From the NCBI RefSeq assembly GCF_000142905.1, contig NW_013657636.1, positions 124,001-188,000 on the forward strand: a DNA stretch of 64,000 nt. The letters run 5' to 3'. Shown here piece after piece: positions 22,701 to 59,370 of this stretch (position 1 is its first letter; each line of letters starts with the position of its first letter). Below the pieces are notes generated by a model. The model was not told where the DNA came from. It ran no database searches and saw nothing but the letters and a program-made list of their open reading frames with translations. The DNA is from Thecamonas trahens ATCC 50062 (taxonomy: Eukaryota; Protista; Apusomonadida). Both the position numbers and the translations under genes were made by a program.

Positions 22701-23411
22701 TTAATCGGTGTCGCGCGCTGCAAGGATGACGGCAGTGCGGCGGTCGGGGCGGATGCAGACGATGCCCCAGACCCAGGCCGAGTAGGCGTAGAGCTCGGCG
22801 TGCCATGGGGAGAGAAAGGCGTACCACTCGCAGGCAATGATGGTTGGAGACGCATCGGTACGGCTGGCTTTGGTCTCGTCGGCGAGCGTGATGCCAGCTG
22901 CGGCCGCCACGGCGGACCAGGCCTTGGCAAACGCGGCGTCGGGTGTGGCCGACGCCCCGTAGCATCCGCCGACAACCGCGGCCGATCGGAACATCTCCAG
23001 TGCCTGTCGAGGAGTCTGGCGCTGACAGCTCGAGCCGCTCGTAAAGGCCATGCTGACCGCATCAAGGACGGTCTCACACGCCGGCGTGCAGCTAGCATCG
23101 CACGCGGCTGGCTGCAATGGAAGCGGCCCAGCCAATGTGATGGTCGCGCCCTTGATGTGTCCGTTCGATCCGCGATGCCAGGTAGCAACACACTCGAGGG
23201 TGCCGGCTGGTGACTCATCGTACGCCGTCTGTGCGCAGGCCTCCATAGCCTCGGCGCGAAACGCGACGCATCCGTCGCATTGGCATCGGCTGCCGTCGGG
23301 GGATGAGAGCGGTGAGAACGCCGAGTTTCGGGCCGGCACCTCGGAAGCGTCAACCGGTAGACCGAGCTCGACTTGCCCGTCTAGCCCGTCAAGAGTGCCG
23401 TCTGCAGCCAT
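22701..23411 (-). CDS. Hypothetical protein resembling actinobacterial DUF6183 family
   Basis: Intronless ORF. SAAVVGGCYG...AWSAVAAAAG and the C-terminal WYAF...WVWGIVCIRPDRRTAVILAARDTD match the recalled DUF6183 pattern GGAY...AW...PDRR.LAVLAATDTD. Confidence 0.55.
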   Translation of the reverse strand: MAADGTLDGLDGQVELGLPVDASEVPARNSAFSPLSSPDGSRCQCDGCVAFRAEAMEACAQTAYDESPAGTLECVATWHRGSNGHIKGATITLAGPLPLQPAACDASCTPACETVLDAVSMAFTSGSSCQRQTPRQALEMFRSAAVVGGCYGASATPDAAFAKAWSAVAAAAGITLADETKASRTDASPTIIACEWYAFLSPWHAELYAYSAWVWGIVCIRPDRRTAVILAARDTD

Positions 23412-23864: not shown

Positions 23865-25115
23865 ATGGAGAGCCTGTGGCCTGTGCTGGAGGCGCTCGGA
23901 GTGGCCAGTGCTGATGGTGTGGTCAAGACACTGACACTGGCTGTTCCACTGATTGCCACTCTGTGGTATTGGGTATGGCCATGGGGAGAGGAAGAGGGAA
24001 GAGGGGGAAGGGGGGGGGGGGGATACTCATGGTGTGTATGTGTATGTATGCGTGTGATCGGTTGGGTGGTGGGGTCATGGCTGACGGTGGTGGTCATGGC
24101 TGACGGTGGCTGATGGTGGCTGGTGGTGGCTGGTGGTGGCTGGTGGTGGCTGGTGGTGGCTGGTGGTGGCTGGTGGTGGCTGATCATGGCTGATGGTGGG
24201 TGGTTATGGTTGACGGTGGCCGGTTATGACTGGGCATGGCTGATGGTGGCCGGTGTTGGCTTGTGCGGGCGGATGGTGGCTGGTCATGGACAGAGTAACC
24301 GATCTTTGTTCTCGGTCCCGTGGCAAACAGCTCATCCGTCGGGCTACTGCGAGCGGTATGATCCGCGCCACTACTCGGAAGAGGTGCGTGGCTCAGAACT
24401 GGTGGTGGAGAATGGGAATGCGCTGGAGAACGTGCCGTCGGCTGAGCACGACCTCGCGTATCCGCACAGGCGGTTCGCGCCGACGATCAAGAGCCATGCC
24501 GAGCTGCTGGCGGCGTCACGGGCACACTACGAGATGATGAACTCACGGCGGTCGTGCCGGTTCTTCTCCACGGCGCCTGTCCCGCGCGAGGTCATCGACA
24601 ACATCGTGCTGACTGCTGGCACGGCACCGTCGGGTGCCCACATGCAGCCGTGGACCTTTGTGGTGGTCTCGGACCCGGGCGTGAAGCGGGCCATTCGTGA
24701 GGCCGCCGAGGCTGAGGAGCGGACCAACTACGACTCGCGGATGTCGGAGGAGTGGAAGCGCGACTTGGCGCCGCTTGGCACCGACTGGCAGAAGCCGTTT
24801 CTCGAGCTTGCGCCGTACCTCATTGTGGTCTTCAAGCAGACGTACGGGGCACGGCCCGATGGGACGCGGGCGACGCACTACTACTTTGAAAAGTCGGTCG
24901 GCATCGCCACAGGCATGCTCATCGGTGCCATCCACGCCGCTGGGCTCACCACTCTCACCCACACACCCACGCCGATGGGCTTTCTCTCTTTCATCCTCCA
25001 GCGCCCGCCCAACGAGAAGCCGTATCTCTTGCTCCCGGTCGGTTACCCGGCCGAGGCCGCCACCGTGCCGGACCTCAAGCGCAAGGCGCTGTCAGAGATC
25101 ATGACTGTAGTGTAG
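23865..25115 (+). CDS. IYD: Iodotyrosine deiodinase (nitroreductase superfamily) with N-terminal membrane anchor; intron 23973-24293
   Basis: Motifs RRSCRFFS, GTAPSGAHMQPWTFVVV, EAEERTNY, LGTDWQKPFLELAPYLIVVFKQ and LTHTP. A hydrophobic first exon joins in frame through GTATGG...CAG. Confidence 0.9.
24075..24290 (+). repeat. Intronic (TGGTGGTGGC)n / ATGGCTGA low-complexity repeat
   Basis: About 7 perfect 10-mers at 24111-24180 with degenerate flanks, inside the IYD intron. Confidence 0.8.
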
Positions 25116-25168
25116 CGTTCGAGCCATTTACATCGGGGGAGGAGGCAAATGCACGCGCATCAACGTAA

Positions 25169-25972
25169 CCCTTTACGGTACGGAATAGACAACTTGTCCA
25201 TCGCGCAAGCCACGCTCCGGCGACGCTCCACAAACGTCGCAACGTCCATGAAATGTGTAAAAGAGTAGCACAATGTGTTCATGGCTGCCACAACAGAAAA
25301 CAGTCGGCGATGCAGGATGGACGCCGCACGCGGCACAAGAGGTCCGCCGTCGCGATCGCTTACCATGAAGCTTCCGGCCAGGGAGGCAGTCGCATCGCAG
25401 AGCGGCTTGTTGGGGAAGGTGGTGATGACAAGCAGCCGCTGCAGAAGGACGCTTTTACTTGCGCAACGGCGCGGAGCTGGCGGTGAGGGCGTCGATGACG
25501 TCGTAGAGAAAAGCCACGTGAGTCGTTGCGGGGCGTGGGCTTGCGTCGGCGTACGCGTTGATGAGCGCGGCGTCCAGAATCTAGTACAAGGATGGCGTGC
25601 CACGAACTTGCGCGGCCATGCCGACCAGCAAGCTCGTCCGTCGCAAGACGTCCTCGCGCTCTCCCGTCTGGCCGCTGTGTTCAACTCTGTCATGCTCTCC
25701 TTCCCGGTCGTCGGGGTCGTCAACGACAAGCTCCGCACCGTCCGCGCCCGCCGCTCCTCCGGGTCGGCACCGTACGGCACCTCGCACGCCTCGCCCCATG
25801 CTCCCAGGCGTCCGTGACCGCGATGGCAACTCAGGCATCCTCCAGGCGGGCGTCTACGTGTCGACCGCCATCACGTGCGGGCGCGCCTCCCACCCACCGG
25901 GAAGTCAAGCATCATCGAGTTGTTCACTTAAAGACGCGCGACAATGCGTCCGAACGACCGTACCGTCAAGGG
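25169..25972 (-). mobile_element. Non-autonomous piggyBac-derived element, copy 1
   Basis: 15-bp TIRs CCCTTTACGGTACGG / CCGTACCGTCAAGGG (1 mismatch), flanked by GTAA and TTAA. It carries a decayed transposase C-terminus including the Cys-rich domain and is homologous to 32244-33105 in inverted orientation. Confidence 0.85.
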
Positions 25973-26691
25973 TTAATGGCCGACGGGGAGGAGGCCGATG
26001 TTGGCGCACTGCTTGAATGAGCCGAACGAGACAATGTACTCGGTGCGAATGACGATCGGCGTCGGGTGCGTCACCGTCGGCGCGGTGATCTCGGCCGTGT
26101 AAACCGTCAGCGACGACGTGTTCGTGTCCTTGATGAAGGCCAGCGAGTGGAAGTCCGAGCTGTCGTCCTCGGCGTACGAGATCTGGAACCCGCCCTGCGG
26201 GTACTTGGCATCGTAGTGGTTGAGGTTCTTCTGGAACACAATCGTGTGCTTCTGGCCAGACATCAGCCACACCTCGGGATCAGTCGGCTTTGCCCCGCCG
26301 CACGGGCCGGTCATCAGGCCACACGCGTCGGCATGCGGGGCGTTGACGCCCTCCAGTGCCGTCCTATCGTCCGTAGTGCACCATCACGATCACCACATCA
26401 TATCATCCAAGCCAAGAAATAAGTCGCACTCTCCAAAAAGTCACGTGCACGGCATCCCCCTGAAAAAAACCCCCTTTCCCTCCCTCGTGCGACTCTCTCC
26501 GCCTTTTCTTCTTTGTTGCCCCCTTCCCCCCCCCCTCCCCCCCCCCTCCCCCCCTCCCCCTTCCCTCCTCCGTCAGCCACCACCACCGCCACCACCACCA
26601 CCTACCGCTGTGCAGGGTTGAACATGCACACGTGGGCCAGGGAGACAGCCATGAGGCAGGAAAAGACAGCAATGATCACAGCAAGCTTCAT
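25973..26691 (-). CDS. Secreted His1 protein, LPMO-like/copper-binding fold candidate; intron 26364-26605
   Basis: Spliced product MKLAVIIAVFSCLMAVSLA|HVCMFNPAQRTALEGVNAPHADACGLMTGPCGG...VFQKNLNHY...FKQCANI. The phase-2 GTAGGT...TAG intron restores the frame. Confidence 0.75.
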
Positions 26692-26811
26692 GTTGGACGA
26701 GTGTAGAGTGCGGTGTGGCCTGTCTGTCGCTGTCGGGTGGCTGTCGGGTGGCTGTCGATGTCGATGGCTGGCCGGGAGCCCATTGATCGATAGCCAGCGA
26801 TTGCATTTGGG

Positions 26812-27095
26812 TTGGCAGCCAGCCATCGGCGACCAGTCAGCCATCGCCTGTTCATCGCAAGTCAGCCATCGCCTGCTCATCGCCATCGGCAGCCAGCCAG
26901 CCATCGCCTGCTCATCGCCAGTCAGCCATCGCCTGTTCATCGCAAGTCAGCCATCGCCTGCTCATCGGCAGCCAGCCAGCCATCGCCTGCTCATCGCCAG
27001 CCAGCCAGCCATCGCCTGCTCATCGGCAGCCAGCCAGCCATCGCCTGCTCATCGCCAGCCAGCCATCCCTGTGTGGTCGGCAGCCAGCCATCCCT
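26812..27095 (+). repeat. Minisatellite, core CAGCCATCGCCTGCTCATCG (~10 imperfect copies)
   Basis: Directly visible tandem repeat in the divergent intergenic region. Confidence 0.85.
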
Positions 27096-27234
27096 GCCTT
27101 GTGCATGTCTAGCTTGCTCTCGGTGGTGCGGCGGTGGGTGTGGTCGGCAGCCAGGACATGTCGGTCGGCGAATGAAACCCCGTCTGGGCGCAGAGCCACC
27201 GCACTCGCTCCTCCCTCCCCCCTCGACCACTGCC

Positions 27235-29178
27235 ATGGCCGACAGCGGCCAGCCTGCGGAGCCACCGGTGGTGCTGGGTGCAGAGGGCGAAGGCCCTGTC
27301 CCAGAGCCCTGGGTCCGGCTCAACGTGGGTGGCACGCTCTTCACCACCACCCGGGCCACCCTCGGCCTGTGCCCCGACTCGGTCCTCGCCGCCATGTTCC
27401 CGCTCTCCGGCCCGCCCTCGCTCCCCATCGCCCGTGCTGCCGATGGCGCCTACCTGCTTGATCGCGAGCCGGCCTACTTTGGCCCGCTTCTCTCCTACCT
27501 TCGCTCAGGCGCCGTCTTTATCGATGCCGGCATCGCCGCCACGGGCGTACTCCACGAGGCCCGCGCCTTTGGCATCACCCCGCTCGTCGCCCTGCTCGAT
27601 GCCCAGCTCGCTGATGAGGCCCAGCCCAAGCTCGCTCCGGCCCTCTACCTGGTCGTCCGCTGTGTCACCCTGTATCAGGCTGGTCGTGCCCGGACAAACA
27701 TCGCCTACATGGGCCCACTCTCCCGCCGCAAGCGAGAGCGCCTCGAAGGCGTTTCGCTCTCGCCTGCGCTCAACATGCTTGCCTCCTGGGGCTGGCGGCT
27801 CGTCACTTCGTGCGGCAAGGGCGGCGATCATGAGAAGTTTATCTTCTCCAAAACCCCCAAGTCGCTCCGCTCCGCCCGCCGTTACATCGATACCATCCTC
27901 TCGCCCTCGGTCCGCCACGACCCGATGACTGCTCTCCGTTCAGAGTTTGATCCGCCGGTCGACTCGGACACCGAGGCCGATACCCAGCCCGACTTTGGCT
28001 CTGCATCGCTTTCCTCCTCTGCCGACTCGTCGTCGGCTGAGCCCGACATGCCCGATCCTGAGCTCGACGCCACGGACCCGGCCGCCTCAGACCCAGCCGC
28101 CGGCATCGCCGTGACTGCCTCGACCCATGCGCTGGACGGTGGCGCCGGCGCAGCTGAGCACGCGCTGCACCGTGCTGTCCAGCGCGCGCGCCGTGCCCGT
28201 CGTAAGCGTGACTCGACGGCCCTCGTCTATCCGGTCGAGGAGCTCTTCCGCGCCGACGACGAGTGGATCTCGCTTAATGTCGGTGGCAGGATCTTCTGCA
28301 CCACACTGCGGACTCTCCGCGACCGTGCTCCGGCCTCGATGCTTGCGCACATGTTCCGTCCGCTCACCGAAGGTGACGAGCCGGCCTCGCCTAGTGCCCC
28401 GGCCTCGTTTGCCTGGCACTCGGCCCGCGACGCCCACGGCAACTATCTACTCGACCGCGACCCACGCTACTTTGGCCCCATCCTCCACTACCTCCGGACC
28501 GGCAACCTAGTTGTCGACCCGGGCGTATCGCTCGAGGGCATCCGCGCCGAGGCGCTCTTCTTCCAGATTGCCCCACTCATCACCGCTGTCGAGCAGCGCC
28601 TCAACGCTCCCGACGAGGCACCGCTCTTCCAGTACCTCATCGTCCGCTCGGTGACCCTCTACTACGCCTCGCGCGCCCAGGTCAAGGTCACGATCCGCGG
28701 GCCGTACAACCGCTTTCGCGACACAGACCTTGAGAACCTCTCACTTGCCCAGATCTTCAACATCGTCGCCGCTGATGGCTGGCGACTGCAGTCGGCCTCA
28801 GGCAAGGGAGGCGACCACGAGAAGTTTGTCTTTGAGCGCCCGTTCTCAGACGCAAACCACCCTTCGGTTCTCGAGCCACTCCTTCCGCGCAATGCATCGA
28901 CCCTAGATCCCGCAGGGCCTACCCCCGCTGCAGCTGCATCCGCCGCCGCCGCCGCCGCTCTCAATCCGCGAGGCGCCACCGCCATCCCTGTAGGCGCCGG
29001 CGCCGCCATCGCCGCCACCACTGCCGCCGCCGCTGCTGCTGCTGCCGCCACCGCTGCGCTGCGTTCACCCGCCGCCACCACCACCACCACCACGACCACC
29101 ACCGCAGCCGCCTCCTCCTCCTCCACCCGCCACCGCACCTCATCCTCATCCTCGTCGTCCTCGTCCGACTCGTTCTAG
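27235..29178 (+). CDS. KCTD-like protein with two tandem BTB/T1 + C-terminal (H1/GFRP-like) modules
   Basis: Two copies of W(V/I).LNVGG..F.TT..TL...LLDR.P.YFGP.L.YLR.G, each followed by L...GWRL....GKGGDHEKF.F. Confidence 0.88.
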   Translation: MADSGQPAEPPVVLGAEGEGPVPEPWVRLNVGGTLFTTTRATLGLCPDSVLAAMFPLSGPPSLPIARAADGAYLLDREPAYFGPLLSYLRSGAVFIDAGIAATGVLHEARAFGITPLVALLDAQLADEAQPKLAPALYLVVRCVTLYQAGRARTNIAYMGPLSRRKRERLEGVSLSPALNMLASWGWRLVTSCGKGGDHEKFIFSKTPKSLRSARRYIDTILSPSVRHDPMTALRSEFDPPVDSDTEADTQPDFGSASLSSSADSSSAEPDMPDPELDATDPAASDPAAGIAVTASTHALDGGAGAAEHALHRAVQRARRARRKRDSTALVYPVEELFRADDEWISLNVGGRIFCTTLRTLRDRAPASMLAHMFRPLTEGDEPASPSAPASFAWHSARDAHGNYLLDRDPRYFGPILHYLRTGNLVVDPGVSLEGIRAEALFFQIAPLITAVEQRLNAPDEAPLFQYLIVRSVTLYYASRAQVKVTIRGPYNRFRDTDLENLSLAQIFNIVAADGWRLQSASGKGGDHEKFVFERPFSDANHPSVLEPLLPRNASTLDPAGPTPAAAASAAAAAALNPRGATAIPVGAGAAIAATTAAAAAAAAATAALRSPAATTTTTTTTTAAASSSSTRHRTSSSSSSSSSDSF

Positions 29179-29451
29179 CGCCTTGCTCCTTGCTCGGCCG
29201 TGATGATGACCGTGGCCGCACCAATGAATGTGCTCCCCGACTTCAGCCGCCTGCCCGGCGTCAGTCACCCAACATCAACCACCACCATGCCACCCACGAG
29301 CCACGCATCGATCGTGCCCCGCGTGCCAGACTGGCTGTCGTTCTGCTCCCGCTGCGCCGACTGCCTGACTCGGCTCCTCCCTCGCAGCCACCGGCACCTC
29401 CCTCCCCCCCCCCCTTCCCCCCCTCCCCCTGACCTGTATCCACACTATGCC

Positions 29452-31076
29452 ATGACGACAGCCGCCTTTCTCGCCTCTGTCCTTGTCCTCGACCTCGCCT
29501 TTGTCCTCACCACCACCGCCACCGCCACTCCCTCCTCCACCCAGCTCGACCTTGTTGTGGTCGGCCTCGGCCCGTCAGGCTTGACTGCCATGGCCACCGC
29601 CGCCGCCGGCCGCATCCCGGTCCTCCGCCCTCTGCAGCATCTGCATCCGGCAGGTTCTGCCCTAGCCGACGCTCTGCCGCTACCGCTGGTCCATGCCCTC
29701 GCTCTGGCTTCCGACGCCGGGCTGGCGAGGCTTGACGGCCGATCCGATGCCCCCGCTGCGCTCCTGGTCGATGCCCACGCTGCGCCGCGGGCTGACGATC
29801 CCCATCACTCTGGCTACGGCCTTGCAGAGTCAGCGCTGGACATGGTGTCCTCCGACGTCGCTACCGCGCTGAACGTGCTGGCGGTCGGCGATGCTCCGCC
29901 AGGAGGATCCTGGCACGCTATGGCCGCGCACATGGCCACCCTCTCGCCTGGCGAATGGATGGCCTTGCCAGGCATGCCGTTCTGGCCATGGCTCCTCTGC
30001 TCGACGCCGGACGCTCTGTTTAACGCAGTCCTTCTGCCTCATCACGCCGATGCTGAGCATGAACTCCGGGCCGAGCTGGCCGCCGTCACGCCGCAGCTCT
30101 GTGCGCCGAAAACCTGTCTTCGACAGCGTGGCTGCGATCGCTCGATGACGCCACTCTCCTCCGCGAAGCCCTGGCTTTTGCCCGTCCGCGCCGCCAACTT
30201 GTTGTCGACTACTATGCAGCGTACCCCGCGGCCATGGCTCTGCCACCAGACACGATCAAGCATGGCTACCGTGTCGTTGCCGTGGACCTTGCGCCGGATG
30301 GAGCTGGCTTTGATCTCGTTGCGCTGCGGTGCGATGCGCCCGGCCCGCATGCCCCGCTCCGGCTCTCAGCCCGTGCTGTAGTCCTTGCCCTCGGTATGTA
30401 CGGCAAGCCGAAGATGCTAGGCGTGCCCGGCGAGGACCTGCCGCTGGTTCACCACCGGACGGCGGCAGTGGACGACCTGGATCCTGACCTTGCCGCCACC
30501 GTGGTGATTGTGGGTGACGGTCTCTCGGCCGCCGATGCGCTTGCTGCGCTGCTCGGCGACGGCTACTCTTGTCGTGTCGTTCATCTGTTCCGAAGAGACA
30601 CTGATGGCGAGCTTAGCCTCGACTCGTATCGCGGCGCCGATGACGAGTATCCTGAGTACGCACGCGTTCTTGAGCTCATGGAAGGCACGGCGACCCACAC
30701 TCGGTATTCAGGGATGGAAGGGAAGGCTATAGCACGCATCACGTCAGCAGGGCAGGTAGTGCTGAGCGACGGCTCTATCCTTGTTGACGTCAGTGCTGTT
30801 CTTGTTCTCATCGGCTCGACGCCCGATCTCGGTCTGTTGTCACCATCGCTGTTGGAGCGACTTGGCATCGGGGCGCCTGACTCGCAAGATGTGCTCCGCA
30901 AGCCGCTGGCGGTCCATCCGCGGACCTTTGAGGTCCGCGCCGTACCTAGCCTCTATGCTGTGGGCCCGCTCGCCGGCGAAAACTTTGTCCGCTTCAATGT
31001 GGGCACCGCCCTCGCTGCCGCCTACACGGCGGTGCTCCGGGCGCTGGCAGCTACGCAGCACGCGGTAGCCGTTTGA
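29452..31076 (+). CDS. OSGIN1/2-like FAD-dependent oxidoreductase; frameshift near 30130
   Basis: Motifs VVVGLGPSG, GRSDAPAALLVD, PPGGSWHAM..MATLSPGEWMALPG, VIVGDGLSAAD and LYAVGPLAGENFVRF. Start is uncertain (alternative near 29224). Confidence 0.8.
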
Positions 31077-31077
31077 T

Positions 31078-32123
31078 TCAAAAGTACGAGTACGATGTGG
31101 CGATGTGGCGCTGCGACGCAACCTGCGGGCGAGGCACAGTAGGTGAGCGGCTTGGCCTGTGCGACGAGGCGCAGTCACCCATCGGCATGCAGACAGCCGC
31201 CGGCACGGGTCCTGCTTCCCGCGGCGAAACCGCTGGCTGCGCCACCTCCGCCTCCAACAGCGCCTTTTTCTTGGCCAGCCTACGGGAGCGCGCCTTGAGC
31301 GATGTTCGCAGCTTTTTGATCCTCTCGAGACGGGCACGGACCGGTCCGATCGGCGAATTTGCCTCGCGCTCGGCGTTGGCGTTGGATTGGCGGGTGTGGG
31401 CCGAGTCAAGAAAAGCGCGGTAGGCGCGCGTCGCTGCCTCCAACCGGTTCTTGGCATCAGCAGTGGTAGCTTCCACATCTGCGCGCTGCGCTGCCAGCTC
31501 CTCAGCCTCGGCACGCGCCACTGCCGCACCTGCAGTGGCAGCCGCCACCCTGTCCCGCGCCGACGTCTCCTCGGCCTTGAGCTGGGCGAGCGAGATCCAG
31601 CGCTCGTCGCCGTCCCCAGCATTTGGAACGCAGACGAGGCCGTCTTTGATCCGCATGCAAAGTGGATGATTGGCCATGCGGGCAAGGACGACACCGCGGC
31701 GATCGGCAAGGTCCTTGCCCAGTCCGGCCAGCTCGGCTTCGGCTGCCTCTGCCGCGGCTTCGGCAGTGTCGGCGGTAGCATCGAGACGGGCGGCGAGGTC
31801 GGCGGCGGCGGCGGCGCTTGATGCGGCAGCAATGCGGATGGCAAGAAGGTGCTCGAGGCTATCTGTTCCGGACCGCCGCATTTGCTTCAGCCTGTGCAGC
31901 CGCTGAAGGTCGTCCTGATGGCTCCTGTGGCGCAGGACGAGCGTGAGTGTGGCCCCCACAATGCGACCTTTTTTTCGCCGCGGTGGCGAGGCTGTGGCAT
32001 GACCTGACGACCTTTTTCTGCACCGCGGGAGACGTACCGCTGGGCAAGCCGCAGAGCAGTGGTCACTTCCTGCAGATCAGCTTCAATGCGGTGGACATGG
32101 GCTAGAAGCTGATCGGCGTTCAT
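31078..32123 (-). CDS. Hypothetical coiled-coil protein; frameshift at a homopolymer near 31970
   Basis: Two adjacent ORFs (31887-32123 and 31078-31959) with Ala/Glu/Arg-rich helices. Confidence 0.5.
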
Positions 32124-32243
32124 GGGTCGAAAAGAGGGGCGGCCGGTCTGGCGACAAGTGCCGAGGAGAGGAGGGAGCGGTGTGGTGGTCGAGGCATACG
32201 CTGAGCCATCAGCCGAGCAGCAGATGGCGTGACGGGCTCATCA

Positions 32244-33105
32244 CCCTTATCGGTACGGTCGTTCGGACGCGTTGTCGCGCGTCTTCAAGTGAACAGCTCG
32301 ATGATGCTTGACTTCCCGGTGGGAGGCGCGCCCGTACGTGATGGCGACCGACACGTAGACGCCCGCCTGGGGGATGCCCGAGTTGCCATCGCGGTCACGG
32401 ACGCCTGGAAGCATGGGGCGAGGCGTGCGAGGTGCCGTACGGTGCCGATCCGGAGGAGCGGCGGGCACGGACGGTGCGGAGCTTGTCGTTGACGACCCCG
32501 ACGACAGGGAAGGAGAGCATGACAGAGTTGAACACAGCGGCCAGACGGGAGAGCGCGAGGACGTCTTGCGACGGACGAGCTTGCTGGTCGGCATGGCCGC
32601 GCAAGTGGTGGCACGCCATTCTTGTACTGGATTCTGGACCCCGCGCTCATCAACGCGTACGCGCTCTACGCTGCCGTGAGCCCACGCCCCGCAATGACTC
32701 GCGCGGCTTTTGTCTACGACATCATCGACGCCCCCGCCGCCAGCGCCGACGCTGTCAGCTCGCGCCCTCGCCGCCGGCGCCGACGCCGTCAGCTCCGCGC
32801 TGTCGCGCAAGTGGAAGCGTCCCTCTGGAGCGGCTGCTCGTCATCATCATCACATTCCCCAACAAGCCGCTCTGCGATGCGACTGCCTCGCCTGCCGGAA
32901 GCTTCATGGTAAGCGATCGCGGCCGCGGACCTTTTGTGCCGCGTGCGGCGTCCATCCTGCATCGCCGACTGTTTTCTGTTGTGGCAGCCATGAACACATT
33001 GTGCTACTCTTTTACAACAATCCATGGACGTTGCGACGTCTGTGGAGCGTCGCGGAGCGCGGCTTGCGCGATGGGAAAAAACTGTCCATTCCGTACTGGA
33101 AAGGA
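32244..33105 (+). mobile_element. Non-autonomous piggyBac-derived element, copy 2
   Basis: Ends CCCTTATCGGTACGG ... CCGTACTGGAAAGGA followed by TTAA. Transposase remnants KWWH..YWILDPALINAYALY...MTRAAF and CDCLACRKLHGKRSRPRTFCAACGVH are broken by frameshifts. Confidence 0.85.
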
Positions 33106-35898
33106 TTAAACGAGGGCGGCAAAGGCGGAGCGCTGGCGCTCGAGGCGGAGCTCGCGATCGCGGGCAAAGCGGACAACGCCGGCGTAGATAGACTCGGTGT
33201 CGAGCTTGGCCTCGGCGATGACATCAGGCTCGAGGCCGCCGGTGCGCCAGCGGTCGTCGTGGTCAGTGGCAAGGGTGTACTCGGTGGTGAGCGGGCCGAG
33301 GTTGCGGAGCGGGAAGATGGTCTTGGTCATGGTGGTCACGACCATGCAATCGTAGTGAGCGGCGAGCGGCATGACCTTGTTGCGGTACTCCTCCGACTGG
33401 ATGTCGAAAAGCTCCTGCGAGACGACCGAGACGATGCGGACGTTGATGCCTTCAGCCTCGAGACGCGGGATGAGCGAGACCAGGTTGACAGTTGAGGAGC
33501 AGCCCTGAACGAGGACGGTGCCCATGGGAGGCTCGTTGTCCGAGTACTCGCGAATGACGTATGCGCCCTTGGCGGCAGCGCGCGGGTCGGAGTCGGCAAA
33601 AGCGGAGCGGTCGGCGACGGCGAGGTCGGGGCGGGCGACGTGGACGGCAATGATCGAGGTGTTCTTGTTGGTGAGCGCCATGTTGAGGGCGGCAAAGTAA
33701 CCCGGGCAGACGTCGTTGTAGTCCCAGAAGTACAGGTTAACGATGTGGCCGTTGGGGAAGAGGCGCCAGCACTGGGGGGCGTAGACACCAAAGTGCGAGC
33801 GGGCGTCGGCAGCGGTCTCGGGGCCCGAGTGGCCGGCGATGACGGTGACGGTGCCGAGCGCAAACGGCGAGTCCTGGTTCTGCTGCGAGAAGATGCGAAG
33901 CGGGAGGTAGAATAGCGGAGTAAACGCACCGTAGGTGCCAGTGGCGGCGTGGAACCCGTTGTGGACCGCCGGGTCAGCCGAGAGCGTCTGCGACGCAATG
34001 CCAGCCGCTGTGCACGCGTTGCCGGCCTCCTGAATGGCGGCCTTAAGGCGCGTGCCGGCCACGTTGGTCACCGGCGAGTAGTGGCCGGTCCAGTTGGAGT
34101 TCTCCAGATTGATCGAGTTCGAGAGGTCTGCGGCAATGGTCATGTACCGGTTGCCAGTCACGTAGTTGATCCACTTGCCAAACTCGGAGATGGCACGGCG
34201 GGTGCCCTTCTTGGTTCCGGCCGGTAGCGACATGCGGATGGTCTCAGTCATCTCCTCACCGGTCACCGGGTGGACCATGGTGAGCTCAACGGGCTCAAGC
34301 GGAATGTTGTCCACAAGGAGGCGCTCGTCGAGGAACGGGTCGGCCGCCGCCGGTGCCAGCCGAAGCGTCGTCTCGAACGACGCGGTGGCGGCTTCCCAGT
34401 CCGAGGCGATGCGGACGAGGCGCTGCGCGATCCACTTGCGAATGGCGCCGTCGTTGGCGTCGAGGACCGAGAGGCAGACGTCGATGTTGGTCTTGAACTG
34501 CCGGAGGCGCTCGGCCTCGGTGGCCGGCGGCGCGTCACGGATGCCGACAAACTCGACGCCAAACTTGGCCTCGAACGACTCGGCAAGCGCCACAAAGTAC
34601 TCCGAGTTCATCTTCATCGAGTACGGGTGAGACGGATACGAGACAATCTGCTCAGTCGAGCCAACCTTGCCGTCCTTGGCTGCCGGCCACCAGCCCTTCA
34701 CCGTGTGGGCAATGACAACCATCGGGCGGCGGTCCGCAGGGTCCGACTCCTCCATGGCCTTAAACGTGGCCAGCAGGTCGGCGTACGACGAGCCGTCGAC
34801 AAGCTCGACCACGTTCCAGCCGTACGAGGTAAACTGCTCCACGATGTTGTACGAGTCGGCGTACTCGCTCGGCACCACGCCACCCACCAGTGCGTCGTCG
34901 ATGCCGGCGTTGTTGTACGAGAAGAAGAAGCGGAGACGCTTGCCGACCTGCTGCGCAAGCGCAATCGTCTTGAGCTCCTGGGCGTGGCCCTCGGTAAAGG
35001 CAAACTCACCTTCGAGCGCCCAGATCTTGAGCGAGTCCGGCGCGCCGGCCGCGTCCCAGAACAGTGCCTTACCCGCGGTCGTCGCCGCGCCCACGCCTGA
35101 TGGTCCGCCGTTGACGTCGTTGGTCACGTCGGTCGTCTCCGAGTGGCCCATGAGCGCGCGGATCCCGCGGATCTTGGCCTGCTCAAACAGCGGCTCGTCT
35201 GCCACACCAGCATCCTCCAGCAGAGTCTTGACCGCGTCCGGCGACCGCCGGAAGCCGAGCGCGTCGATGGCGTACATGCCGATCTCCGGATCGACCTTGT
35301 ACGTGTCGTCACCCGTCGCAGCATGCTCGCGTGCCATCGACTCGTACAGAATCATCCACAGCGAGTAGCACGTCGGGATGCAGTGCCCGCCGGTGAGCAT
35401 GAACTTGTCGGAGAACGGATGCTTCGGGTTGCGGATGTCATACCCGAGCGCACCGTTCGACGGCAGGCCAAGATGCAGCGCCACGTTGGCTGGCGTGTAC
35501 GACATCGGCCCTCCAAAGTGGCCCGTCTGTGCATAGTTGCCCATCACCACCATGTTCATTGCAGTGATGAACCCAACGTCCGCAAACATCTGCTCATCAA
35601 AGTCCACAAGGCTATTCCCCCGTCCCCCCCCGCAGTATACCCCACCGATGTCCGTGGTGAGTAAGGCCATGTGACCCATGCCACCGCCACGCCATCACGC
35701 CCTCCACGCTCTCCTTCCGCCTCCACCACCGCCACCGCACATGTCCACGACCCCCCCCCCCCCCTCCCCTCATCCCCCATGCTCTCCTCCCCTCCCCTCC
35801 CCTGCTTCCACCCATCTTCACCTCCCTCCTCCCTCCCCTTCCCCCCCCCCCCCCCCTGCGCTTCACGCGTGTTCGTGTTCGTACTTGGAGGCCGACAT
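33106..35898 (-). CDS. Atypical long transketolase-family (ThDP-dependent) enzyme; intron 35612-35884
   Basis: Motifs GHFGG, GGHCIP, GHSET, NGGPSGVG, HTVKGW, AADLSNS, AAIQEAGN, TYGAF and HSGPETAADARSH. A phase-2 GTACGA...TAG intron gives the N-terminus MSASNLVDFDEQ. Confidence 0.85.
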
Positions 35899-47218: not shown

Positions 47219-47589
47219 CACGGGATTAATCGTTGGCTTTGGAATACGGGATTAATCGTTGGCTTTGGGGGTACGATTAATCGTTGGCTTTGGGGGCACG
47301 GGATTAATCGTTGGCTTTGGGGGTACGATTAATCGTTGGCTTTGGGGGTACGATTAATCGTTGGCTTTGGGGGCACGGGATTAATCGTTGGCTTTGGGGG
47401 TACGGGATTAATCGTTGGCTTTGGGGGTACGGGATTAATCGTTGGCTTTGGGTGTACGGGATTAATCGTTGGCTTTGGGGGTACGGGATTAATCGTTGGC
47501 TTTGGGTGTACGGGATTAATCGTTGGCTTTGGGTGTACGGGATTAATCGTTGGCTTTGGGTGTACGGGATTAATCGTTGGCTTTGGGTG
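47219..47589 (+). repeat. Minisatellite, 14 copies of 25-27 bp unit GGGATTAATCGTTGGCTTTGGG(G/T)GTAC
   Basis: Counted 14 GATTAATCG cores with no unique spacers, in the annexin/RACK1 divergent promoter. Confidence 0.95.
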
Positions 47590-47681: not shown

Positions 47682-49538
47682 ATGGCCTCGACGAACCAGA
47701 AGCTTTCCATGCGCGGCGTGCTTGCCGGTCACGGCGGCTGGGTGACGTCCATTGCGACGACGCCCGAGTCGAACGACATGATCCTCACCGGATCCCGCGA
47801 CAAGTCCGTCATCGTGTGGGACCTTGTCCGCGAGGAGGGCCAGTACGGCCTTGCCAAGCGTGCCCTTACCGGCCACGACCACTTCATCGAGGACGTCGTG
47901 ATTTCGTGCGACACCCAGTTCGCCCTCTCGTGCTCGTGGGACAAGACCCTGCGCCTTTGGGACCTTGCTGACGGCTCGACCGCCCGCCGCTTCATTGACC
48001 ACGACAAGGACGTCCTCTCCGTCGCCTTCTCCGCCGACAACCGCCAGATTGTCTCGGCTGGCCGCGACAAGTCGATCAAGCTGTGGAACACCCTCGGCCA
48101 GTGCAAGTGTACGTCGCTGTCTGTCCGCCGCCTCCGGCCTCCGCCTGCTGCCTCCCACACTGCCTCCTCGGGCCTACCACCCCCCGCCTTGGCGCCCACG
48201 CCCCTGCCGCCTCTACCCGCCCTCCCGGCCCCCGTTCTCCCCTCTCCCATGCCCCTCCTGTACCCCCCTCGCCTGCCGGCCAAAGGCCCTCGCTCCGCGG
48301 ATGGCCACATTTTCGCTCATTTTGCGGTTTTTGTATGACTCGGCCGCCAGGCCCTCGCCTTGCCGCCGCCCCTCCTGCTGCCCTGCCGCCTCTGCCGCCA
48401 CACTCTCGCCCGCCATCTCTTGTGCACGGCCTGGGTGGCCCTCCTTCCCCCTGCCCCCCCCCTCTCTCTTGCTCCCCTCCTTCCCTCTCCCCCAATCTTC
48501 CCTGCTACCGGTGGCCACGCTGCTACCAGAGGCTACCCTTTCCGGCCACCCGATCCAGGGTGTACACCACCGTCCTCCCCCCCTCTCTCTCTCTCTCTCA
48601 CTCACCCTCCTTATGCTCTGCTGGTCCTGGTCCTGCTGGTCTGTCTGCCCCCCCCCCCCNNNNNNNNNNNNNNNNNNNNNNNNNNNNNNNNNNNNNNNNN
48701 NNNNNNNNNNNNNNNNNNNNNNNNNNNNNNNNNNNNNNNNNNNNNNNNNNNNNNNNNNNTAAAAAAAAAAAATAAAAAAAAAACAAAAAAAAAAAAAAAT
48801 GTTGTGCTTTCAGCCGCAGGGGGGGGGGGGATGGAGGGGGGGGTGGTTTTGTTTTTATAGATCACCCTCGAGCCCCCCCCCCCCCCCTTCCGCCTGGTCG
48901 TGGTTGCTCTCCTGTTTCTGCTTGTGCTGCTCTCCACGTGGCTGCTGCTTTTCTTTATCGTTGGGCTCCTCCTTCTCCTGCTGATGGACCGCTTGTTCGC
49001 ACTCGCCTTCAACAGACACCATTGCCGACTCGGACGCCCACACCGACTGGGTCTCGTGCGTGCGCTTCTCGCCGAACCAGCAGACGCCCCTCATCATCTC
49101 CGGTGGCTGGGACAAGGTCGTCAAGGTCTGGAACCTCACCAACTGCAAGCTGCAGACCAACCTCGGTCGACAACCGCGCAGGTCAACACCGTGACTGTCT
49201 CGCCCGATGGCTCGCTCTGCGCCTCGGGTGGCAAGGACGGCACCGCCATGCTCTGGGACCTCAACGAGGGCAAGCACCTCTACAAGCTCGACGCCGAGAA
49301 CCCCATCAACGCGCTCTGCTTCTCCCCGCAGCGCTACTGGCTCTGCGCCGCCACCGACGAGGGCATCAAGATCTGGGACCTCGAGTCGAAGTCGCTTGTC
49401 GACGAGCTCAAGCCCGAGCTTGACCTCGAGACCACCAAGGTCCCGTCGGTCCTCTCCCTCGCCTGGTCCGCCGACGGCAACACCCTCTTTGCCGGCTACA
49501 CCGACAACGTCGTCCGTGTGTGGCAGCTCCGCCAGTAA
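47682..49538 (+). CDS. RACK1: RACK1 (40S WD40 protein); intron 48109-49015 containing an N gap; apparent frameshift near 49170
   Basis: Motifs [61 protein letters not shown] and [18 protein letters not shown]. Confidence 0.97.
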
Positions 49539-58701: not shown

Positions 58702-59370
58702 CTGTGGGGTTGTGAGTGTGATGATGATGACGATGATGGTGATGATGACCAAGATGACCGTGCCCATGACAATGATGATCAAGGCGGTGATGGCCATGAC
58801 TGCACCCCCATGCCCCAACATGTCAATGGTCATGACCATACCACCGATACTCCTTCCCCACACCATCCATACCCCCCCCCNNNNNNNNNNNNNNNNNNNN
58901 NNNNNNNNNNNNNNNNNNNNNNNNNNNNNNNNNNNNNNNNNNNNNNNNNNNNNNNNNNNNNNNNNNNNNNNNNNNNNNNNNNNNNNNNNNNNNNNNNNNT
59001 CAGCGCCCGATGAAACCTGTTGTATAGGGCGGCTGGTGCGCGCTGGTGAGTTCGGGATCTGAGGCGAACATGAGGCCGGGCGATGTGCCCGTTGTGAAGC
59101 GCAGCCCCTGTGCCGCCATCCTACTCGATTTTTGGCGCGTTGACGGGGTGAGGGGGATGCCACAAGATTGGGGTTCATGCCACACGGTGAGGAGGTGGAG
59201 GTGGAGAGGGGGGGGGGGGGCATCAGGTGGCGATCACAGCGTCAAGCAGTTGAGGGCTGTAATGGGGATGATGGGGTGTAGGGAGTGTGGGCAGTCAATG
59301 AGTTCATAGATTCATGGTAGTGGGAGAGCGAGTGAGATCAGAGGATGGGAGGAACACGGAACGTTCTAAC

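Follow-up and report, generated by a model that had tools for sequence, protein, structure and literature searches.

Short piggyBac-type elements in the genome of Thecamonas trahens are enriched at stop codons and at the immediate 3' ends of genes

We analysed a 64-kb stretch of the Thecamonas trahens ATCC 50062 genome (contig C44, positions 124001-188000; hereafter the window, to which coordinates given without a contig or locus name refer) that carries two short piggyBac-type transposable elements, each of which abuts a TTAA containing the TAA stop codon of a host gene. Copy 1 (25169-25972, minus strand, 804 bp) is a non-autonomous element with the remnant of a transposase C-terminus on the minus strand, interrupted by stops and frameshifts. 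It is bounded by a T-type terminal repeat (25169-25192) and an A-type terminal repeat (25949-25972), which read CCCTT[T/G]ACGGTACGG, its outermost letters being CCCTTTACGGTACGG... from 25169 and ...CCGTACCGTCAAGGG up to 25972. On the gene side its target-site duplication is TTAA (25973-25976, minus strand), of which bases 25973-25975 form the TAA stop (CAT TAA) of a secreted His-brace-like gene, and on the far side the duplication (25165-25168) has decayed to GTAA and lies 53 nt past the TAG stop of a nitroreductase-family gene. Copy 2 (32244-33105, plus strand, 862 bp) is inverted relative to copy 1 and has a plus-strand transposase remnant that includes a Cys-rich stretch, an A-type terminal repeat at 32244-32267 (CCCTTATCGGTACGG, starting at 32244) and a degenerate T-type terminal repeat at 33082-33105 (TCCTTTCCAGTACGG). 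Its gene-side TTAA (33106-33109, minus strand) contributes bases 33106-33108 as the TAA stop (GTT TAA) of a transketolase-like gene, and its far-side duplication (32240-32243) has decayed to ATCA. Both junctions were re-read in 24600-33700, where they appear as GGG-TTAA-TGG at 25970-25979 and AAAGGA-TTAA-AC at 33100-33111; the junction sequences and the ends of the open reading frames (ORFs) agree, as a preliminary description of this DNA had proposed, that both elements end exactly on host stop codons.

Copies 1 and 2 are identical in 91% of columns in a MAFFT alignment and 86% identical by BLAST, with 289-nt blocks in common that are 97% identical, and no third copy of the element was found in the 64-kb window. 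Between the members of this inverted pair (25169-33105) lies a 6.3-kb block, in which there are a double-BTB (KCTD-like) gene, a Pyr_redox_3 gene and a probable coiled-coil gene. Recombination between the two copies could flip this block, and the palindromic TTAA would conceal such an event.

The preliminary description called for a genome-wide comparison of element ends at stop codons with background TTAA sites, which we made in the 28.7-Mb assembly of T. trahens (131 contigs). Element ends were sampled by the terminal-repeat pattern CCCTTWACGGTACGG alone, blind to the flanks; this 15-bp repeat of the CCC...GGG type stands at both element ends and is matched exactly 35 times in the genome and with one mismatch at least 65 times. 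The 100 matches listed, with zero or one mismatch, correspond to at least about 87 elements and are biased towards well-kept terminal repeats. From each of the 100 ends, 900 nt were fetched outward and genes were called by codon log-odds trained on 40 long ORFs, that is, with a codon-usage caller of our own and not from annotation; a caller based only on G+C content at third codon positions (GC3) was dropped as too noisy (236 'long ORF stops' in 144 kb). A stop hit was defined as an ORF of at least 100 codons, with a score of at least 0.2, whose stop codon coincides with the final three bases of the duplication. Elements were masked in the background, which combined the window with eight 10-kb pieces, picked arbitrarily, and with the outer flanks of 30 loci, for a total of 254 kb and 95 TTAA sites.

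By this measure, 19 of the 100 element ends lie on a gene stop, and 17 of the ORFs concerned run for at least 298 codons, to the edge of the flank; counted per element, 18 of about 87 (21%) have an end on a stop. Background TTAA sites reach stops far less often, whether all directional TTAA ends are considered (3/182, p = 4.5e-7) or non-coding ends only (3/107, p = 1.7e-4), and a matched control made up of the TTAA sites inside the same 100 flanks yielded 1/49 (p = 0.004). In a conservative version the DUF6183 stop that the caller had missed (22701) was added by hand, a 14-site tandem array was collapsed to one site and the discovery cases were removed; the excess persisted, at 18/97 ends against 4/81 non-coding background ends (p = 0.006), and the pooled background gave 5/231 (p = 4e-7 against 19/100). 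A set of elements chosen by BLAST had 6 of 28 on stops. Together, these data place about 19% of element ends on stop codons as compared to about 2% of background sites, and the enrichment predicted beforehand is therefore present. The number of terminal-repeat mismatches was uninformative as a proxy for age, since the stop share was the same with no mismatch (6/35) and with one (12-13/65).

Two features of the window's own TTAA complement are described here. The DUF6183-family gene (22701-23411, minus strand; profile reaching 360/360, E = 1e-14) has atypical codon usage, and its T-TAA stop (22701-22704) is unoccupied by an element and constitutes a natural control. At 47226-47570, just upstream of a gene head, a 25-27-nt unit (…GGGATTAATCGTTGGCTTTGG…) with a TTAA in it occurs 14 times in tandem; 40% of the TTAA sites in the window belong to this array, and no site of the array is occupied by an element.

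Are the occupied stops the native ends of their genes? When a TTAA is the T-TAA stop of a gene, the gene-side duplicate restores the stop without any change to the protein, and since insertion into a TTAA read in another frame would create no stop at the junction, the stops must have pre-existed. Pfam searches with 18 further ORFs that end on an element duplication returned conserved families. Profiles reach the last residue for MoeA_C (72/72), PSME4_C (88/88) and the villin headpiece (VHP, 36/36) of a talin-like protein, while the serine carboxypeptidase S10 profile extends to 420/420, three residues before the protein end. Other stop-docked genes encode a class I/II aminotransferase (361/361), an HSP90 that ends in HEDL, RPS3, a GKRP-like protein, UFL1, TRAPPC10 and a papain-family protease, and beyond the sampled list there are three more cases: a Glu/Gln-tRNA synthetase, at which the duplication is now TGA, adenylate kinase and a PH-domain protein. 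In all, at least 22 conserved genes carry an element that starts at the base after the stop codon. These genes keep their native C-termini and element insertion leaves the proteins intact, an expectation of the preliminary description that is upheld by Pfam profiles and known C-terminal motifs that extend to the last residue.

The stop codon is the most frequent position within a wider zone. The nearest coding ORF that faces an element end is a gene tail at 53 of the 100 ends and a gene head at 13, with no such ORF at 34. The zone from 0 to 70 nt past a stop holds 48 ends, from at least 53% of elements; of these, 18 are at 0 nt, 2 at 1-4 nt, 17 at 8-23 nt and 11 at 33-70 nt. Background ends fall in the same zone in 4/120 cases (p = 7e-16), or 4/48 when only non-coding sites are counted (p = 9e-7). 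The zone makes up approximately 5-8% of non-coding DNA, and the excess of element ends there is 10- to 27-fold. The niche of the family is thus the immediate 3' end of the gene, with stop-codon hits as its mode, so that the 'stop-codon safe haven' originally suggested holds with respect to enrichment at stops and is too narrow with respect to extent. At the 48 gene-proximal ends we found no shared flank motif beyond TTAA and the position after a stop.

Within this niche, the stop itself took 18 of the 48 ends and positions at 1-70 nt the other 30, a ratio similar to that of the TTAA sites available. Of the 42 gene stops called with confidence in the window and loci L106-L113, three are T-TAA and two more TTAA sites occur in the next 70 nt. 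The earlier idea that T-TAA stops supply a large share of TTAA sites accordingly applies inside the 0-70-nt zone (3 versus 2 across the 42 genes) and fails genome-wide, where they make up only about 3-5% of all TTAA sites. The TTAA tetramer is scarce, with 65 sites in 144 kb where base composition predicts 155 (0.42 of expected; 0.4 per kb). The coding fraction, by codon-usage classification, is 0.63, and the gaps between the stops of convergent genes are often very short (18, 42, 50, 71, 122 and 143 nt; half of those sampled measure 18-143 nt). The 42 confident stops comprise 17 TAG, 15 TGA and 10 TAA codons; a T precedes the stop only with TAA (3/3 TTAA, none before TAG or TGA), in numbers that are small. 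At locus L084 (G000:C22:271236-272164) the T-TAA stop of the gene is unoccupied and an element sits 34 nt downstream at a decayed site, which implies that stop-codon TTAAs are not obligatory targets, even when adjacent. A search for a second transposable element family as a safe-haven control found three large convergent gaps that all consist of unique sequence, and two further regions of the window gave no usable family.

Members of the family are short (approximately 250-900 bp) and, genome-wide, at least 63 of 135 candidates are BLAST matches, 74-88% identical to copy 1. All copies have two end types in common, the T-type CCCTTTACGGTACGGAATGGACAA and the A-type CCCTTAACGGTACGGTCGTTCGGA. The target-site duplication is an intact TTAA at 30 of the 100 ends and one or two bases off at most others, and TTAA is present on both sides of several elements (C34:191541-191799, C21:239833-240149, C2:67242-67957 and locus L007). 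We considered decay of the duplication (intact at 10/18 stop ends and 20/82 others) as evidence of selection and dropped it as circular, given that a stop is required by definition. The usual A-type repeat (CCCTTAACGG...) has a TTAA of its own at bases 4-7, into which a further element could potentially insert; this TTAA is mutated in the A-type repeats of both window copies, to TTGA in copy 1 (25949-25972) and to TTAT in copy 2 (32244-32267).

A search of the genome with the PF13843 (DDE_Tnp_1_7) profile returned two partial matches only, one of them with a stop. The better match is a 336-residue ORF at locus L031 (L031:1081-2091, minus strand), which covers profile positions 191-349 of 349 (E = 2.5e-12, above the cut-off) and is the longest transposase remnant in the genome, consisting of the C-terminal part only; it stays open through the T-type terminal repeat and the duplication (…SIPYRKGLKG). 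The two window copies align to residues 184-333 of this ORF (E = 2e-39 and 2e-30), with stops and frameshifts. Both the L031 ORF and copy 2 contain a readable Cys-rich stretch (C..C....C..C..C...C), but no Pfam zinc-ribbon model matched. The L031 remnant itself lies 8 nt past the stop of a 343-residue ORF that has no assigned family. The genome-wide PF13843 search found no complete catalytic triad and no autonomous active copy, which bears on the activity of the family and not on its ancestry. Judged from its sequence, the family is a piggyBac-superfamily derivative that is extinct and non-autonomous, its internally deleted copies having been amplified in trans. The term 'piggyBac relics' was therefore apt as to identity, given TTAA, the terminal repeats and the PF13843 remnant, and inapt as to origin, because the copies are amplified deleted elements and not the product of independent decay of full-length copies.

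At the locus itself, the secreted His-brace-like gene has a terminal-exon ORF at 25973-26314 (minus strand; ends CAT TAA) with a GC3 of 0.89, a codon log-odds of 0.70 and a weak BIM1-like/X325 match (E = 0.05), and its signal-peptide exon lies at approximately 26600-26691. The convergent nitroreductase-family gene occupies 24123-25115 (plus strand, TAG stop), and without copy 1 the stop-to-stop spacer between the two genes would be about 57 nt. The transketolase-like gene (33106-35679, minus strand; ends GTT TAA) encodes 857 residues with Transketolase_N and Transketolase_C_1 domains and is 100% identical to a T. trahens protein; it ends in ...RQRSAFAALV, and homologues with 59-70% identity end 0-2 residues from the same position. 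On its other side, copy 2 faces a probable two-exon gene with weak coding scores (31078-32123, minus strand; ATG at 32121-32123). The A-type end of copy 2 is 120 nt from this ATG, so that the element sits on the tail side of a tail-to-head spacer. Short tandem repeats adjoin gene starts at 26786-27113 and 24049-24309, one with 25/29-nt units (GCCAGCCATCGCCTGCTCATC...) and the other with a 10-nt period (GGTGGCTGGT...). Long C/CT-rich tracts are present at 26500-26570 and 29395-29430, and runs of N at 48660-48759 and 58881-58999 mark assembly gaps or masked stretches.

We consider the pattern to be best explained, with a probability of roughly 0.6, by the scarcity of TTAA combined with purifying selection in a tightly packed genome. 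Few TTAA sites exist in this GC-rich genome; given this scarcity and the tight packing of genes, insertions in exons and in promoter-side spacers would be purged, those in the tiny 3' spacers would survive, and as about half of the TTAA sites in 3' spacers are stop codons, the survivors would pile up on stops. Several observations weigh against this explanation. The selection it invokes is inferred from copies that are all old, fixed relics (74-88% identical to copy 1), which makes insertion preference and survival inseparable. An insertion 0-23 nt past a stop should sever the gene from its 3' untranslated region (UTR) and polyadenylation (polyA) signal, which is not obviously neutral, and such insertions are found even at RPS3, HSP90 and a tRNA synthetase gene. 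Two regularities are not predicted by pure availability, namely the clustering of ends at 8-23 nt, where 17 of the 28 ends between 8 and 70 nt fall (p = 2e-5 relative to a uniform distribution over 1-70 nt), and the A-type (transposase-5') end facing the gene more often at distances of up to 23 nt (26/37 versus 28/63, p = 0.014). Finally, the background is small (254 kb, 95 TTAA sites) and our home-made caller missed at least one real gene, that of the DUF6183 family.

These same regularities could be accounted for if the lost transposase had preferred gene 3' ends, through nucleosome-depleted or termination-associated chromatin or a host tether, such that the pattern reflects insertion preference instead of survival. 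The 10- to 27-fold excess in the 70-nt zone after stops, the tight clusters at 0 and 8-23 nt, the modest orientation bias and the small number of ends that face a gene head (13 of 100), although promoter-side TTAAs are commoner in the background, all point in this direction. Against active targeting, nothing is conserved in the flanks beyond TTAA; both orientations occur, and the bias at distance 0 weakens to 14:8 when four extra stop cases are included; the share of stops among hits in the niche equals availability; and the surviving transposase is a C-terminal remnant only, which holds no examinable targeting domain. Moreover, piggyBac transposases that have been studied prefer 5' regions and open chromatin, not 3' ends, and overall we regard targeting as unlikely. 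Less probable still is that elements beside stops were kept for a function, as 3' UTR, polyA site, terminator or buffer between convergent units that would otherwise collide. Their retention at essential, highly expressed genes (RPS3, HSP90, Glu/Gln-tRNA synthetase) fits such co-option, as do convergent spacers of 18-71 nt that leave almost no room for a 3' UTR and the presence of the same 15-bp repeat at both ends, from which a signal could act from either side. Nine subterminal bases are also slightly better conserved at gene-adjacent ends (0.59 versus 1.14 mismatches, p = 0.055), but this difference is marginal, no recognisable polyA or terminator motif was found, in a k-mer search after stops that was confounded by leftover element sequence, and about half of the copies are located elsewhere.

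That the pattern is a product of chance or ascertainment, with two coincidences in one window or stop-overlapping duplications that are easier to recognise, is very improbable. The initial observation did comprise only two cases, and stop-codon TTAAs, being protected from decay, look cleaner (10/18 intact versus 20/82), but ends were sampled by the terminal repeat with their flanks ignored, the test counts long coding ORFs that end at the boundary and not intact TTAAs, the excess remains without the discovery cases and against the pooled background (p = 0.006 and 4e-7, as given above), and the BLAST-chosen set behaves alike. A bolder proposition, that the transposase was directed to termination zones and stop codons, or that dozens of housekeeping genes (among them RPS3, HSP90, a tRNA synthetase and talin) now use the terminal repeats as 3'-end or terminator modules, seems to us possible and rather doubtful. 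If either were true, the TAA within the piggyBac target would make 'stop-codon docking' general for transposons that target TTAA (and TAA or TTA) in GC-rich compact genomes.

Several known systems resemble the arrangement in part. Like other piggyBac-superfamily (piggyBac-like) elements and their miniature inverted-repeat derivatives, the Thecamonas family has a TTAA duplication, CCC...GGG terminal inverted repeats, a PF13843-type transposase remnant, in which the readable Cys-rich stretch may correspond to the C-terminal Cys-rich domain, and internally deleted copies that were amplified in trans; unlike them, it is without an intact transposase, and its copies are concentrated at gene 3' ends and native stops. 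Pokey, a piggyBac-superfamily element of Daphnia, inserts at one TTAA in the 28S ribosomal DNA (PMC3849761). Pokey copies likewise occupy a particular functional class of TTAA site, but this is one conserved sequence in a multicopy gene, whereas the Thecamonas family is spread over many unrelated single-copy gene ends with nothing in common except TTAA and the position relative to the stop. The safe haven of Tn7 is attTn7, just downstream of glmS (PMC2918618). Tn7 is similar in that it settles right after a coding region and leaves the protein intact, and different in that its selector, TnsD, reads the end of the glmS coding sequence at a single site, while the Thecamonas family is eukaryotic, with no selector or conserved flank seen. 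In the Thecamonas family, the link between element and stop arises because the TTAA target contains TAA. Yeast Ty and Dictyostelium TRE retrotransposons target sites beside RNA polymerase III genes in compact genomes, tethered to polymerase III factors. They too illustrate that transposable elements of gene-dense genomes persist only in narrow harmless niches, although the niche in Thecamonas is the 3' end of protein-coding genes. Full-text searches of the literature turned up no account of stop-codon docking by piggyBac or any other transposon, nor any mention of piggyBac in Thecamonas.

These findings provide a clean, quantifiable case of a transposon target sequence interacting with genome composition. 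In a GC-rich, gene-dense genome a TAA stop is one of the few places outside exons and promoters where TTAA occurs, and an insertion there leaves no mark on the protein, as the stop is restored by the duplication. Since piggyBac excises precisely, such an insertion would also be reversible. The stop-docked genes constitute a natural experiment on how little 3' UTR T. trahens can do with and on whether the ends of a transposon are able to provide 3'-end signals, and we predict that the same pattern would be found for elements that target TTAA or TAA in other compact, GC-rich eukaryotes.

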